From the sequence record LC592711.1: 64,000 nucleotides of DNA; one strand, 5' to 3'. Below are positions 8,286-63,971 of this stretch, one piece after another (positions within the stretch are counted from its first letter, which is position 1; each line of letters begins with the position of its first letter). The notes under the pieces were generated by a model. The model was not told the origin of the DNA. It did not search any database and worked only from the letters and a program-made list of their open reading frames with translations. A program made the position numbers and the translations under genes.

Positions 8286-9875
8286 TTACTGCTGTTCGCC
8301 ATCCGGACCCGGATAGTCGATCGACGACTTCACCACCCAATCCGAAAGAGGCGGTTTACCTTCCAGGCTGCGAATGAAGTTCTTCACTCGTACTTCGAAC
8401 GGCATTACACGTCCGTCATACGTTTCGTACAGATGGTCGACCAATGCTGCGATGAACGCGTTCAGCTTCGTTTCACGATCCGGATCAATCGGATCGATCT
8501 TCAGCATGTTCGGGTTGATGTAGTGTTCAACTGCTGCACGAATGAAGTACTTCGGGTCTTCCGGGTTAGCGAAACGGCTGAACTTCTGATCCGTCTCTTC
8601 AAGCAAAGGACCAGGTTCGACGCCCGGGAAAGTTCCCCAGACGTGAGCAATCAACGTACGCTTGATCGTTTCGAATTGCGACATGCGTTCTTCTTCCGTA
8701 CCTTCCAGATAGAAGAGACTCGGCGACAGGTAGTTCTCGACGGCCTGACGGACCAGCAGGAGCTGCTTGTAGTCCGGATACTGCTGAAGCTTAACGCCTT
8801 CATGACCTGCCGTTTGACGCATTTCGCTCAACGCCAGCTTTTTGGCAGAAGAACGCGATGCGACCATCGTGTCGTAGACGGTTTTGAACTTCGTATCGTA
8901 AGCAACCATCTGGTCCTTGTAGACAACGTTCGGAACCAGATTCTTCTCGACGATACGAACAGTCGCACCGACACACTGTTGCTGGAACAAAGATTCCCAC
9001 GGTTCGGGCTTCACCGCCGTCTCGTATTGTTCATCGTTCCAGGTAACCGGGATACTCAGCACCCGAAGCTTATCGGCGATGATACCGCACAATGCCGACT
9101 TACCCACGCCGGTACGACCCATCACCACGACACGAATGTCCCCACCATTCAAGTAGTCGAGCGGAAGACCCTGACGACCCAGAACAGCCAATGTCCATGC
9201 CACGGCACCATCCCACATGACGCGAGCATTCTTCGTGTCATAATGACCGTACTGATTAGGATAGTGCGGATGGTCCGGATCGTAACGCTGGACATCCTTG
9301 ATGAAGTTCTGCTGACGTGCGAACGATTCGAACGCCTTGGTATCGTCGACGATGACGTCCGGCCGCTGTTCGATCAAACCGGTCTGCCAGCCATATGGCT
9401 CGATCTTGACTTCATGATAGCGGGCCAGTTGACGAACGTAAGCGACCGCATCGGACTCGTGCCAGAAATCGACGGAGTGTTTTACCATTCCGTTTTCGTA
9501 GCGCGAATAGACGCCGTAGCCTTTCGTTTCATCATTAGCGCCGTCCATCTGAATTTCGATGGAACCCTGCTCCAGTTCCTTAAACGGAGCAAGCTGAAGA
9601 CCGATGATCTTACCCGCCTTTTTATCGACGGTATGTTGGCCGATGTAGACAGGTATTTTGTATTCGTAGGCGAGGTTGGTCGCCGTTGCTGCAGCCTGAC
9701 CGATGTCGGTGAAGTAATTCGGATCGACTGGACTCAGGCTGCCGTCTTCGTGTTCCCAGAACAGAATCCAGCCAGCGAACCCGCGTTCGCCCTTCGCTTC
9801 AAATGCACCGACTACTTCACCATCGAGGTTTTTCACTGCGGGAATAACGCGAACCGACTTTGCTTTGTTCTGCAT
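8286..9875 (-). CDS. Mosaic hypothetical protein with duplicated N-terminal module and short P-loop
   Basis: VVVMGRTGVGKS Walker A-like motif; start moved to MQNKAK with AAGGTG RBS. Confidence 0.7.
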   Translation of the reverse strand: MQNKAKSVRVIPAVKNLDGEVVGAFEAKGERGFAGWILFWEHEDGSLSPVDPNYFTDIGQAAATATNLAYEYKIPVYIGQHTVDKKAGKIIGLQLAPFKELEQGSIEIQMDGANDETKGYGVYSRYENGMVKHSVDFWHESDAVAYVRQLARYHEVKIEPYGWQTGLIEQRPDVIVDDTKAFESFARQQNFIKDVQRYDPDHPHYPNQYGHYDTKNARVMWDGAVAWTLAVLGRQGLPLDYLNGGDIRVVVMGRTGVGKSALCGIIADKLRVLSIPVTWNDEQYETAVKPEPWESLFQQQCVGATVRIVEKNLVPNVVYKDQMVAYDTKFKTVYDTMVASRSSAKKLALSEMRQTAGHEGVKLQQYPDYKQLLLVRQAVENYLSPSLFYLEGTEEERMSQFETIKRTLIAHVWGTFPGVEPGPLLEETDQKFSRFANPEDPKYFIRAAVEHYINPNMLKIDPIDPDRETKLNAFIAALVDHLYETYDGRVMPFEVRVKNFIRSLEGKPPLSDWVVKSSIDYPGPDGEQQ

Positions 9876-26953: not shown

Positions 26954-27487
26954 TTAATAACTCCGATTCGATAGGCGCTGAGCCGTTACCACGTTTTGTG
27001 GAAAGTCATTCAGTTCGTCGAAATGACTCTCATGTACGTCCACCCTGAAGGTGAAGTTATTGATCTTGGTGATCTCGGTGACAGCAGTAAGATCGCTTGT
27101 GTAATGAGGATCGTCCTCATGACCACGAGGCATCTGGTGAGGCGCGAAGTAATAGCCTGCACCTTGCAGTTCTGAAAACACTTCTTCACCGCAGAACAGA
27201 ATCAGATCCCTTAAGCGATCACGATCCAGATGGGAGAGATGGTATCGACCAATCCCAAACTGACTCATGATGCTGTACGACAGATCTTCGAGATTCTGCT
27301 CGCATGCAGCCATCGACCGCGGAAACATTGCACACGCGGTCATGACTTCTTCCATGAAAGCATAGAAAGTCAATGCTCTCAGAAAGCGTAGATACTCAGG
27401 CCACGGTTCACGGGCTGCTTTTTTAACTTCATTCTCGTACGCGTCGTAGGAGCGTTTGAGCCTTATAACAAAAGTGAGATGTGCCAT
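26954..27487 (-). CDS. Hypothetical protein
   Basis: 177-aa ORF. Confidence 0.65.
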   Translation of the reverse strand: MAHLTFVIRLKRSYDAYENEVKKAAREPWPEYLRFLRALTFYAFMEEVMTACAMFPRSMAACEQNLEDLSYSIMSQFGIGRYHLSHLDRDRLRDLILFCGEEVFSELQGAGYYFAPHQMPRGHEDDPHYTSDLTAVTEITKINNFTFRVDVHESHFDELNDFPQNVVTAQRLSNRSY

Positions 27488-27896
27488 TTCGCAGGGGATG
27501 TTTTACAACGATTGCAAAATTGGAACGAGAGACTGGAATGACCCTGACGGGCCGAGTTCCTCTCTCACGGATGTAATCGAAAAGATGAATGTCTTCAAAC
27601 ATCTCCACGATAGATTCGCAGATTGCGTAAAGAATACCGCAGATCTTCACATACGGTTCGTCTTGCGAGAAAACGTATTCCTGGATGATCCCCTTATCGT
27701 AGAGTTTACCGATCAGGTACTCAATCTCATTTATTTGTTGCCGTGCTTCTTTAGCATTTTCCATTCCTTCGGTCAGGAACTTAACTAACTCCTCCAACAG
27801 ATCGCGACGGTTAACGTCCTCGAACATCCCGGTCGTATCGAAACGACGTATATGGCGATCAATGTTGAAGATCACACCGAATCGATATTTCGCCAT
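27429..27896 (-). CDS. Hypothetical protein
   Basis: Start moved to MAKYRFG because the track start lies inside a terminator-containing leader. Confidence 0.62.
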   Translation of the reverse strand: MAKYRFGVIFNIDRHIRRFDTTGMFEDVNRRDLLEELVKFLTEGMENAKEARQQINEIEYLIGKLYDKGIIQEYVFSQDEPYVKICGILYAICESIVEMFEDIHLFDYIRERGTRPVRVIPVSRSNFAIVVKHPLRNGTSHFCYKAQTLLRRVRE

Positions 27897-27909
27897 GATT
27901 ACCCAATTA

Positions 27910-28066
27910 GAAAAAGATCCCCGTCCAGACCCGAATGGGTCTGGATCGGGGCGACACTTATGACACGACAGGATCAACGGCTAAATCGGATCGCTCACCA
28001 TGCCATTAGTCCCGAGAGAATAGCACCCGAGTCGAGGAGAAGACTCTGGAGATGGGCAGCTATTCA
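27910..28066 (-). ncRNA. Candidate ~155-nt structured small RNA or attenuator leader
   Basis: Early promoter at 28072, 5' hairpin 28018-28065 with UUCUCCUC loop, terminator hairpin 27919-27951 plus T-tract; only 3- and 6-codon AUG-initiated ORFs inside. Confidence 0.45.
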
Positions 28067-28071
28067 ATTAG

Positions 28072-28080
28072 GTAATATAT
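28072..28080 (-). promoter_or_regulatory. Putative early promoter core ATATATTAC
   Basis: GATTTCACCG-ATATATTAC-CT immediately after the thyA stop. Confidence 0.68.
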
Positions 28081-28092
28081 CGGTGAAATCAG

Positions 28093-29334
28093 TTACACCG
28101 CTGCCGGCTTGAAACGGATCGGCGGATGCGACTTGTAGTACACCGTCAGGCGAGTGGAGTCGAACTTCGTCACGTCTTCCAGCGTCGGGTCGACGATGAT
28201 GCGTGCCGGTGCCATCGGCGTGCGTTCGAGTTGCTTATTCACGCCTTCATGCTGGTCGTGGTAGATGTGGTAGTCGCCCATGAAGTGGGTGTATTCCCAC
28301 GGCACGAAACCCGTGACTTCAGCGAGCAGATGAGCAAGCAGCGAGTACATGCCGACGTTGAACACCGTACCGAGCGGCACATCCTGCGAACGCGCGAAGC
28401 ATGCGAGCGAAAGCTTGCGTGCAGTGAAACCACCGTCGAGGATCTTGTCGACTTCCAATTGACCTGCTTCGGTGAGTTCCAGTTCGCCGTCATTGCCCAG
28501 GTTGTACTGCATGGACTTGCCGACAAGCAGACCACGGTTAACCAGTTCGCTGTTGATGCGCGTCTTGTAGTACTGTTCCTGAGCTTCGTGGTTCAGGCCA
28601 CGCATGCCTTCGAAAACTTCCTTGAAGATTGCCACAGCGAAGTCTTCCTGATCCATCGAGTAGCGCAGGACTTCGAACGCGGACATCGGAGCCGTGTTGA
28701 CTTGCCACATCGAATGACACGGAGCGAGCGCCATGCGACCAGCGTCTGCGTTCTGTGCAGGCGTCATCTTGGTGTCGGGCAACAGACCTGCGTGCCATAC
28801 ATTCACGACCAGACGACGGCTGTCCGGGTTGTTCTTCAGTTCGTTGACGATGTTCATCAGCTGATCGACACCACCACGCCCGCCGCTTTCGAACGGCGTC
28901 ATCTTCTTGGCTGTTTCCTTCAGGAAGTATTCGCGGATTTCCGGCAGGTTCAGATCGAGCGTGCCGTAGTCGTTTGCGATCTTATCGAAGATCGCATTGA
29001 CATCGCCTTCGTCCAGACCGGTCGTCCAGTTGCGCCACTGTTCGCCGTACATCGGCCCGATCGTTCCGCTTTCCGGACCCATCCACGAGTTCCAGATCTT
29101 GTTATCGCGGTCTTGCAGCCAGTCGACCGAGATGATGCCCTTGAGCATCCATTCCAGTTCTTCGGCGATCTTCTTGTACGCCACTTCACGCGTGGTCGGA
29201 ATCGGCCAGATGCCGTGACGAAGCGAGAACTTCATCATGCCGCCGAACTTCGAAGTCGTACCCGTGCCGGTACGATCGGTCTTCACATCGCCCGTTTCCA
29301 GGATGTCTTTCAAAACGTCGAGATACTGTTTCAT
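28093..29334 (-). CDS. thyA: Thymidylate synthase with two large insertions
   Basis: DRTGTGT, GPMYGEQWR, DSRRLVV, ALAPCH catalytic Cys, RSQDVPLGTVFN, GDYHIY. Confidence 0.95.
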   Translation of the reverse strand: MKQYLDVLKDILETGDVKTDRTGTGTTSKFGGMMKFSLRHGIWPIPTTREVAYKKIAEELEWMLKGIISVDWLQDRDNKIWNSWMGPESGTIGPMYGEQWRNWTTGLDEGDVNAIFDKIANDYGTLDLNLPEIREYFLKETAKKMTPFESGGRGGVDQLMNIVNELKNNPDSRRLVVNVWHAGLLPDTKMTPAQNADAGRMALAPCHSMWQVNTAPMSAFEVLRYSMDQEDFAVAIFKEVFEGMRGLNHEAQEQYYKTRINSELVNRGLLVGKSMQYNLGNDGELELTEAGQLEVDKILDGGFTARKLSLACFARSQDVPLGTVFNVGMYSLLAHLLAEVTGFVPWEYTHFMGDYHIYHDQHEGVNKQLERTPMAPARIIVDPTLEDVTKFDSTRLTVYYKSHPPIRFKPAAV

Positions 29335-29368: not shown

Positions 29369-29749
29369 TTACAGACGAATTTCCATGACCGACAATCGAG
29401 TGCCGGGCTTAATGATTACTCTCTCGGGAAGAGGAATGCAACTGATCTGTTCCAGATACTTTTTAAAGTAATACATCGTCTCTTCAACTCGCAGCAGATA
29501 GGACATTACGTCTGCTGGGAGCCTGCCGAGTCTTTCTCTGATGTCGATTTCAACATCGTCCAGGAACTCACACAGGACGTAATCAAAATCGTCGCCATCT
29601 CGAACCATTTGCCCTTGTAGTCTTTCGACCAATTCCTCACAGAGTTCGAGATAATCGTATTCTATAAAAATCGGCTGTTCTTCTCTTAACAGCCGACTGA
29701 TGCGTCTTTTCTCGTAAGTATCACCGACGAGGTAGCGGGTTTCTCGCAT
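29369..29749 (-). CDS. Acidic hypothetical protein
   Basis: 126-aa ORF. Confidence 0.6.
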   Translation of the reverse strand: MRETRYLVGDTYEKRRISRLLREEQPIFIEYDYLELCEELVERLQGQMVRDGDDFDYVLCEFLDDVEIDIRERLGRLPADVMSYLLRVEETMYYFKKYLEQISCIPLPERVIIKPGTRLSVMEIRL

Positions 29750-30099: not shown

Positions 30100-30140
30100 G
30101 CCAATGAAAGGTTGATATGAAATCAACTTACAACAAAGTT

Positions 30141-30149
30141 GTAATATAT
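30141..30149 (-). promoter_or_regulatory. Putative early promoter core ATATATTAC
   Basis: TTTGATCAGCC-ATATATTAC. Confidence 0.65.
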
Positions 30150-63373: not shown

Positions 63374-63420
63374 AAAAATAAAAAAATAAAACAAAAAAAA
63401 AATCCCCGGACGAACCGGGG
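63374..63420 (-). terminator. Intrinsic terminator with long T-tracts
   Basis: CCCCGG-ttcgt-CCGGGG followed by T-rich tracts. Confidence 0.7.
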
Positions 63421-63443
63421 AAAAATACACGCGCCGCCGAGGG

Positions 63444-63971
63444 CTACATGCGGCGCATGTAGAGGCTCAGTGGCACGTAGGACGGATTCACGAAACGATA
63501 CATTGCTGCAGCGCTCTGTTCCTTCTCGCGACAGTTATTCGCGAAACGAACGAAGTGCTCCAACTCACCCTTGGTTTTGGCAGTGCCGACATACACACTG
63601 TTCTGCTCCTTAAGCGAACTGTAGTAGACTTCGACACCGCCTTCCTTCGAGCGAGCATAGGCTTGTACGCCATCGGGTATGATGACGTCATGCACAGTCT
63701 TGATATAGTTCCGGTTGTACTTCACCGGATACCACAACGACTTATTGACCTCGTCGGTGAACTGACGCAGATTCTCGAAGTAGTAGTTCGCAGCTTCCAG
63801 GACCATGTTCTTGTAATCCGGATTGTGGAACTCCTGCGCAATGCTGCTACCGCTGAATACTCGGATAACAACCTTACGAGGACCCCGCATTGCTGCGACC
63901 ATCTTCGAAGGAAGAATGAAAACGCCATGGCCGGGAATGACCTTGACGCCTTCTTCTTTTTTATCAAACAA
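63444..63971 (-). CDS. Hypothetical protein
   Basis: 175-aa ORF ending before the terminator. Confidence 0.62.
   Translation of the reverse strand: MFDKKEEGVKVIPGHGVFILPSKMVAAMRGPRKVVIRVFSGSSIAQEFHNPDYKNMVLEAANYYFENLRQFTDEVNKSLWYPVKYNRNYIKTVHDVIIPDGVQAYARSKEGGVEVYYSSLKEQNSVYVGTAKTKGELEHFVRFANNCREKEQSAAAMYRFVNPSYVPLSLYMRRM

Follow-up and report, generated by a model that had tools for sequence, protein, structure and literature searches.

Burkholderia phage FLC6 (LC592711.1) is a phiKZ-like jumbo phage of the genus Chiangmaivirus and encodes its own multisubunit RNA polymerases. The window analysed here is a stretch of 64,000 nucleotides that agrees with this record at 100% identity; each window position is the record position minus 124000. 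On the minus strand of the window a gap of 196 nt separates the thymidylate synthase gene gp168 from gp167. This gap holds an element that, from its sequence, is best read as a separate early transcription unit, 28065–27911 (-), in FLC6 and in the genus. The predicted RNA runs on the minus strand from G28065 to the end of a U tract at 27911, a length of 155 nt, and consists of two hairpins, H1 and H2, followed by a terminator. The features of the locus are listed below in the direction of transcription.

28093–29334, minus strand: thymidylate synthase gene, gp168 (annotation; Pfam PF00303, E = 1.7e-71)
28066–28088, minus strand: putative early promoter of the virion RNA polymerase type, made up of TTTCA, 4 nt, the core TATATTAC (28079–28072) and a 6-nt spacer (consensus match, conservation)
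28065, minus strand: predicted transcription start, a G, +/-2 nt (motif spacing, and TG|A at all FLC6 sites)
28018–28065, minus strand: hairpin H1, with an 11-bp outer stem, the 7-nt bulge AUCUCCA (28053–28047), a 5-bp inner stem and the 8-nt loop UUCUCCUC (28041–28034) (covariation, invariant loop)
28017–28015, minus strand: linker of 3 nt
27952–28014, minus strand: hairpin H2, long and irregular, its top formed by GAUCCG, a 7-nt loop, CG, a UU bulge and GAUC (27992–27972) (covariation, invariant 5' arm and top)
27919–27951, minus strand: predicted intrinsic terminator hairpin of 14 bp with one bulged A and a 4-nt loop, -27.7 kcal/mol (covariation, energy)
27911–27918, minus strand: U tract AUCUUUUU, its U run beginning 3 nt past the stem (7 of 8 columns invariant)
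27897–27910, minus strand: spacer of 14 nt with a weak gp167 Shine-Dalgarno sequence
27429–27896, minus strand: gp167, a protein of 155 amino acids and the first gene behind the terminator (synonymous substitution pattern; homologues in this phage clade only)

Early promoter and transcription start

A preliminary description of the locus, made from the sequence alone, had identified the promoter word ATATATTAC at 28080–28072 on the minus strand, and the word is indeed present there. It had overlooked that TATATTAC is a known early-promoter word of phiKZ-like phages, and likewise the CU-rich bulge AUCUCCA and the whole of hairpin H2 with its invariant top. The word TATATTAC is that of the phiKZ early promoters, and the longer consensus of 201phi2-1 and OBP-like phages adds a TTTYA-type element upstream and a TG downstream, with the same spacing as in FLC6 (PMC7058600 Table 2). 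The AT-rich early motif has been placed at about -10 in a review (PMC7598289), and a further, T-rich element upstream of -19 is described from differential RNA sequencing (dRNA-seq; PMC8244752).

In the FLC6 element TTTCA at 28088–28084 occupies positions -23 to -19 relative to G28065, and the spacing is equal at other FLC6 sites. The complete genome contains 14 TATAT[AT]AC sites, some 11–13 of which have the full context of TTTYA, 4 nt, core, 5 nt and TG|A; these full-context sites lie 21–97 nt upstream of gene starts. Within the window TATATTAC occurs three times, against 0.28 expected, and always on the gene strand. The promoter is conserved across the relatives (9 lineages), with one C>T change as the sole difference. 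No sigma-70 promoter was found at 28066–28088. By its core, its T-rich element and its recurrence in the genome, the putative promoter matches the phiKZ-type early, virion RNA polymerase class. The position of the start is a prediction from review statements on motif spacing, and G28065 is also the first base of hairpin H1.

These sites supply an early-promoter consensus for Chiangmaivirus. No promoter analysis was present in the literature examined on this genus, from which Bhunchoth et al. 2016 (RSL2 and RSF1) is excepted as inaccessible. The paper describing FLC6 mentions neither promoters nor non-coding RNAs (PMC8066314).

Fold, covariation and selection

Folding of the 196-nt gap gives -79 kcal/mol (z = -5.4), a value reached by none of 200 shuffled sequences. 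The leader of the element, 169 nt and -69.6 kcal/mol, stands apart from the other early leaders of FLC6, which are 21–97 nt long and weakly folded. The 5' hairpin of the preliminary description was recovered, with GAAUAGC/GCUAUUC in the outer stem, GAGUC/GACUC in the inner stem and UUCUCCUC as its loop.

The element lies between the same two genes in nine phages (FLC6, FLC8, FLC4-11C, FLC4-4C, FLC4-5C, RsoM3USA, RSL2, RSF1 and SURPRISE13) and in three metagenomic lineages that were found through their gp167 homologues (L017–L020, L021 and L022). In an alignment of seven sequences 96.7% of the cells in paired positions can pair, and 13 pairs have changed on both sides, against 4.7 in shuffles. 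With ten sequences the figures are 98.3% and 18 compensatory pairs, against 6.5 in shuffles (0 of 500 reach 18) and at most 4 in slid controls; this alignment was fitted to the covariance model R1, which gives it a slight lean toward structure. In H1 all outer-stem cells and 98% of the inner-stem cells pair, with six pairs changed on both sides. The middle of the outer stem exchanges between GCCC/GGGY, GCUC/GAGC and CACC/GGUG, and because of these exchanges the bulged form of H1 is preferred over the alternative proposed by RNAalifold. In H2 between 95 and 99% of the cells pair, with exchanges of A-U for G-C near the top. Its 5' arm is invariant and its top stem and UU bulge never vary; the 7-nt loop varies in L017 and L021.

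The RNA is under purifying selection. Across the ten taxa, invariant columns make up 47–56% of H1 and 47–58% of H2, 32% of the terminator stem, 0% of the terminator loop and 88% of the U tract, while third codon positions are invariant in 5% of cases in gp167 and in 30% in the thymidylate synthase gene. H1 and H2 are therefore constrained in sequence, and the terminator is constrained in shape only. The preliminary description had made its proposal depend on conservation of the H1 loop in relatives, and CUCCUC is invariant there in all ten sequences, with a predicted unpaired probability of 0.90–1.00. The match to a family early promoter, the covarying stems with their invariant loop and the covarying terminator together argue for a discrete early RNA of about 155 nt, in agreement with the promoter-to-terminator RNA first proposed.

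The most distant relative, L023, has a gp167 that is 56% identical. At L023:1910–2025 (+) a promoter-like TATATCAT is followed by a short leader and by a terminator hairpin of 13 bp, in front of the MAKYRFG gene; H1 and H2 are absent, and the covariance model R1 found no match in L023. This layout suggests that the arrangement of promoter, terminator and gene, and attenuation with it, has no need of H1 and H2. The comparison points to H1 and H2 having a function of their own.

Terminator and expression of gp167

A strong terminator with a U tract had been placed at 27919–27951, about 15 nt before an ATG without a good Shine-Dalgarno sequence, and each part of that description holds. The U tract AUCUUUUU is at 27918–27911, the ATG is at 27896 and the only Shine-Dalgarno sequence is a weak GGGU, which is AGGU in most relatives. 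Nine of the 14 terminator pairs have changed on both sides with every cell still paired and none of the loop columns invariant, and forbidding the hairpin costs 23–29 kcal/mol in every lineage. With a stable GC-rich hairpin, a U tract and a structure kept despite sequence change, this is, as judged from the alignment, an intrinsic terminator. A simple scanner overlooked it, since one A is bulged and the U run is offset by 3 nt.

That offset (AUC, then U5) is conserved, and a U run set off from the stem in this way is expected to make the terminator leaky. With only 14 nt between the U tract and the ATG, gp167 would be expressed by read-through alone. The element also serves as the 3' untranslated region (UTR) of the thymidylate synthase gene, because its terminator is the first after the stop codon of that gene; no other terminator was found between the stop codon and 27919. 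It is likely that this is a plain leaky leader terminator limiting gp167 expression, which is compatible with the production of a short RNA.

The preliminary description had also offered an attenuator controlling the downstream operon. A switching attenuator is not borne out: there is no conserved antiterminator, no leader peptide and no riboswitch match. When the RNA is cut before the 3' arm of the terminator, the 5' arm pairs differently in each lineage, and a candidate antiterminator pairing, UCGGG/CCCGA, is found in the FLC6 group and RsoM3USA only. The terminator arms vary freely next to an upstream sequence that does not change, which leaves no room for a conserved antiterminator. Protein coding of the gap was rejected on both strands, as indels of 1–2 nt between the relatives break every frame. 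These indels are not multiples of three, and therefore there is neither a coding sequence nor a leader peptide.

The start of gp167 has a complement just upstream of the predicted transcription start. There ACCUAAUU (28073–28066) is complementary over 8 nt to AAUUGGGU (27908–27901) in the Shine-Dalgarno region of gp167; AAUUGGGU is the FLC6 form of AAUUAGGU, within which the Shine-Dalgarno sequence lies. Both ACCUAAUU and AAUUAGGU are kept in nine lineages, and the single changes are all G.U-compatible. The predicted accessibility of the gp167 start region is 0.13–0.35 for an RNA beginning 60 nt upstream and 0.35–0.65 for one beginning at the predicted start, with the same direction in 8 of 8 lineages. 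According to these fold predictions, translation of gp167 could depend on the promoter used.

Searches for known families

The covariance search suggested in the preliminary description was carried out: Rfam, at the gathering thresholds and at E <= 10, has no family that matches at the locus, and model R1 aligns the elements of the relatives. Model R1 was searched in FLC6, its relatives and the metagenome loci, and found no paralogue in FLC6. There is no tRNA or tmRNA at the locus and no similarity to E. coli sequences, rRNA included. The exact 21-mer of the H2 top has matches in IMG/VR in RSL2 and RSF1 only, and none in the metagenome and bacterial genome collections. A loop-tolerant pattern gave 62 metagenome matches, of which 60 are chance occurrences and one is a known relative; the last, L077, is anchored by the pattern itself and is a false positive.

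Membership of RF02278, the family of Burkholderia small RNAs considered below, was rejected. Even at E <= 10 the family gives no match at the locus, the FLC6 RNA is 155 nt long, and both of its CU motifs are in H1. The best RF02278 scores in the whole FLC6 genome are 21 bits, at other sites, with a cut-off of 50 bits. These sub-threshold hits are tandem terminator-like hairpins at 63396–63467 (-) in the window and at 9555–9607 (-) in the FLC6 record, the first hairpin of the latter having a CU-rich loop; at both sites the tandem hairpins are probably double terminators. An intergenic hairpin with an ACCUCCU-containing loop beside a terminator is present outside the window, at 199600–199700 (-) of the record, and is not homologous to the 155-nt RNA.

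Possible roles of the RNA

The preliminary description suggested that the RNA blocks Shine-Dalgarno sequences, and an invariant CUCCUC loop that is predicted to be unpaired is consistent with this. Burkholderia double-hairpin 'toxic' small RNAs (RF02278, NcS27) cover ribosome binding sites with CU-rich motifs and slow growth (PMC5688073; PMC4603805; PMC10987360). Among the phage genes, gp147 and gp189 have start regions with a genus-wide GAGGAG Shine-Dalgarno sequence and are candidate targets. No conserved cis partner for CUCCUC was found in the downstream mRNA, where a GAGGAG at codons 35–36 of gp167 is not conserved, and no bipartite target for loop and bulge was found at FLC6 gene starts.

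The reading preferred here, with a probability of roughly 0.45, is that of an early short RNA produced by constitutive termination, with gp167 mRNA from leak-through and an action in trans through CUCCUC on GAGGAG-type sites. The virion-carried phage RNA polymerase would initiate at the canonical early promoter, giving an RNA that opens with H1 followed by H2. Most transcripts would end at the strong constitutive terminator, so that a stable short RNA would be produced within the first minutes of infection, and thymidylate synthase transcripts would end at the same terminator. A minority of polymerases would probably read through, this being the sole route to gp167 and the genes behind it, and the element would be a short-RNA gene and the gp167 leader at once. 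The short RNA would most likely act in trans, with the CUCCUC loop, aided in most lineages by the AUCUCCA bulge, pairing with GAGGAG-type sites and lowering translation.

Several observations weigh against this reading. A seed of 6–7 nt equals a generic anti-Shine-Dalgarno sequence with hundreds of possible partners and therefore names no target; FLC6 has 348 copies of GGAGA, and 96 of these copies precede candidate starts. The bulge motif is not universal, being AACUCCA in L017 and lost in L021 (AUUGCUA). The strongest constraint is in H2, whose unvarying stem and UU bulge resemble a site of protein or tertiary contact more than a seed. The only metatranscriptome evidence is one 151-nt contig that spans the end of the thymidylate synthase gene, the promoter and H1; it is uninformative on transcript ends and, as it crosses the promoter, could be DNA. 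The DNA sequencing runs that contain the relatives are soil metagenomes. RSL2 and RSF1 are sensitive to rifampicin in their growth, and an early role of the virion polymerase was not confirmed in the genus (PMC5468394).

A leader that acts only in cis is the first alternative, and a somewhat unlikely one. In this case the terminator would throttle, or a trans factor would gate, early expression of gp167–gp164, and the short RNA would be a by-product; H1 and H2 would serve the mRNA, for example as a stabilising hairpin at the 5' end or by binding an antitermination or translation factor of the phage or the host. The order promoter-terminator-gp167 is found in every relative, including L023 without H1 and H2, there is no other possible promoter for gp167 in view of the 14 nt between U tract and ATG, and H1 begins at +1 as known 5' stabilisers do. 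The complementarity of ACCUAAUU and AAUUAGGU, which flank the element, and the lower predicted accessibility of the gp167 start in upstream transcripts would also suit a cis role. However, a cis-only role has neither a conserved alternative structure nor a leader peptide to act through, and L023 indicates that a leader terminator works without H1 and H2. It leaves an invariant exposed loop, 130 nt from the start codon, unexplained, and the downstream mRNA has no conserved GAGGAG partner for this loop.

A more far-reaching form of the trans-acting reading is also conceivable, by analogy with the Burkholderia RNAs, and is unlikely as a whole. The RNA would then be an immediate-early regulator copying the principle of NcS27 and the 'toxic' small RNAs, covering ribosome binding sites of the GAGGAG type on certain host or phage mRNAs ahead of the assembly of the phage nucleus, while ACCUAAUU would make translation of gp167 dependent on the promoter. 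If true, a small RNA of a nucleus-forming phage would for the first time have a defined function.

It is improbable, although compatible with the conservation of H2, that the RNA sequesters or recruits a protein of the host or the phage by means of the H2 top and of the CU-rich single strands of the RNA, with no pairing to mRNA. The 5' arm, top stem and UU bulge of H2 are invariant even though pairing alone would permit change, and no specific RNA target has emerged. Known sites of single-strand-binding proteins are pyrimidine-rich, and so are both CU-rich single strands of the RNA. Against such a role, there is no known partner, no similarity to any Rfam family or to E. coli sequences including rRNA, and in distant relatives the 7-nt H2 loop is not constant.

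Very unlikely is a mere 3' UTR and terminator of the thymidylate synthase operon, in which TATATTAC would be inactive and the hairpins would protect the 3' end. The position of the terminator as the first after the thymidylate synthase stop codon would fit, as would the metatranscriptome contig, which extends from that gene past the promoter and on into H1. However, it is the whole 23-nt promoter consensus and not the 8-mer alone that is invariant in all lineages, H1 starts exactly at the predicted start, and the constraint on sequence far exceeds what protection of a 3' end would need. A metabolite- or tRNA-sensing riboswitch or attenuator with a terminator/antiterminator switch has the usual layout of structured leader, terminator and gene in its favour but is largely refuted by the lack of an Rfam match even at E <= 10, by truncated folds that differ between lineages and by terminator arms that vary freely against an invariant upstream sequence.

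Neighbouring genes and other observations

The first codons and the entire frame of gp167 vary synonymously, and by this pattern of substitution it is a real gene. It has no Pfam or PHROG match, and there was nothing usable for it in the atlas. One of five AlphaFold models of gp167 is confident, and that model has no fold neighbour in the PDB. The analysis amends several gene calls in the relatives. Homologues of gp167 are unannotated in RSL2 (L007), RSF1 (L008) and SURPRISE13 (L009), at positions ~433–897, where the frame is conserved with 57–92% identity. SURPRISE13_166, on the strand opposite to the gp167 homologue, is probably spurious, and the start of the L023 homologue has been called 25 nt too early.

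The next gene, gp166 (26954–27487 in the window, minus strand), is annotated with 133 amino acids, against 177 in the PHROG profile and in metagenomic gene calls. The latter two place its start at 27487, overlapping the end of gp167. A Shine-Dalgarno sequence is absent at both candidate starts. The thymidylate synthase (28093–29334, minus strand) has 413 amino acids, and the 266-position Pfam profile is matched in two stretches, so that the protein has a large insertion.

Further upstream, at 29660–29695 (-) of the window, a hairpin (CGGCUGUU / AACAGCCG) followed by UUUUUAU lies directly after the stop codon of gp170 and probably terminates transcription. In that case the early unit beginning at 30148 does not simply include gp169 and the thymidylate synthase gene. 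There is a full early-promoter match at 30141–30148 (-), within the annotated 5' end of gp170 (start 30198); for gp170 the ATG near 30100, about 40 nt past the early promoter, is the more likely true start.

The density of GATC in the whole FLC6 genome is 8.6 per kb, about twice the expectation at 52% G+C. Four GATC sites lie within 80 nt of the RNA gene, at 27911–27992 of the window, and three of these are invariant among the relatives.

Comparison with known systems

The put element of phage HK022 is a cis-acting RNA of processive antitermination. The FLC6 element likewise has a pair of adjacent hairpins immediately after an early phage promoter and ahead of a terminator, but a match in sequence or structure to what is generally known of put is absent. 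An antiterminating RNA would leave the conserved terminator without a purpose, whichever polymerase transcribed the RNA.

Small RNAs of type I from 3' UTRs, such as DapZ and MicL, have a promoter of their own and share their terminator with the upstream mRNA. The FLC6 element resembles these, with a putative promoter just past the upstream stop codon and a short RNA that would end at the terminator of that gene. It differs in that its promoter is of the phage-polymerase type and in that a downstream gene appears to depend on read-through of the terminator.

The RF02278 and NcS27 'toxic' RNAs of the Betaproteobacteria likewise have unpaired CU-rich motifs complementary to ribosome binding sites and end in a terminator hairpin, and they occur in the order to which the FLC6 host belongs. 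Overexpression of NcS27 slows growth (PMC5688073, PMC4603805). The FLC6 RNA is longer, at 155 nt against 57–92 nt, has both of its CU motifs in H1 (in its bulge and its loop, respectively) rather than one in each short hairpin, and has the large hairpin H2 in addition.

The closest parallel in layout is with the short leader RNAs of other phiKZ-like phages, of which the element, on this analogy, is a new example. In phiKZ 17 candidate short RNAs from termination in 5' UTRs have been reported; two are confirmed by northern blot, and one is more than 90% terminated (Putzeys et al. 2024, PMC10914365). In 201phi2-1 there are 11 candidate 5' UTR short RNAs, one of which is conserved across genera (PMC11512511). 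Like FLC6, these phages are phiKZ-like and encode their own RNA polymerases. A start, which in FLC6 is predicted, and an intrinsic terminator lie within 250 nt and just upstream of a gene, giving a short structured RNA and a minor read-through mRNA (again predicted in FLC6), and the RNA is conserved within the genus. The likeness described is one of layout; at the level of sequence, model R1 covered FLC6, its relatives and the metagenome loci. The FLC6 RNA differs in belonging to Chiangmaivirus, on Burkholderia and Ralstonia, and its evidence is comparative, from covariation, rather than transcriptomic. In addition, the FLC6 unit is at the same time the 3' UTR of the gene before it, and its RNA carries an invariant anti-Shine-Dalgarno-like loop.

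The short leader RNAs of phiKZ and 201phi2-1 have been catalogued without a known function, most of them without comparative support. With a defined covarying fold, a clear candidate seed and a natural relative that lacks the hairpins, the FLC6 element is a good test case, in which action of such leader RNAs in trans, in cis or in both ways can be cleanly told apart.

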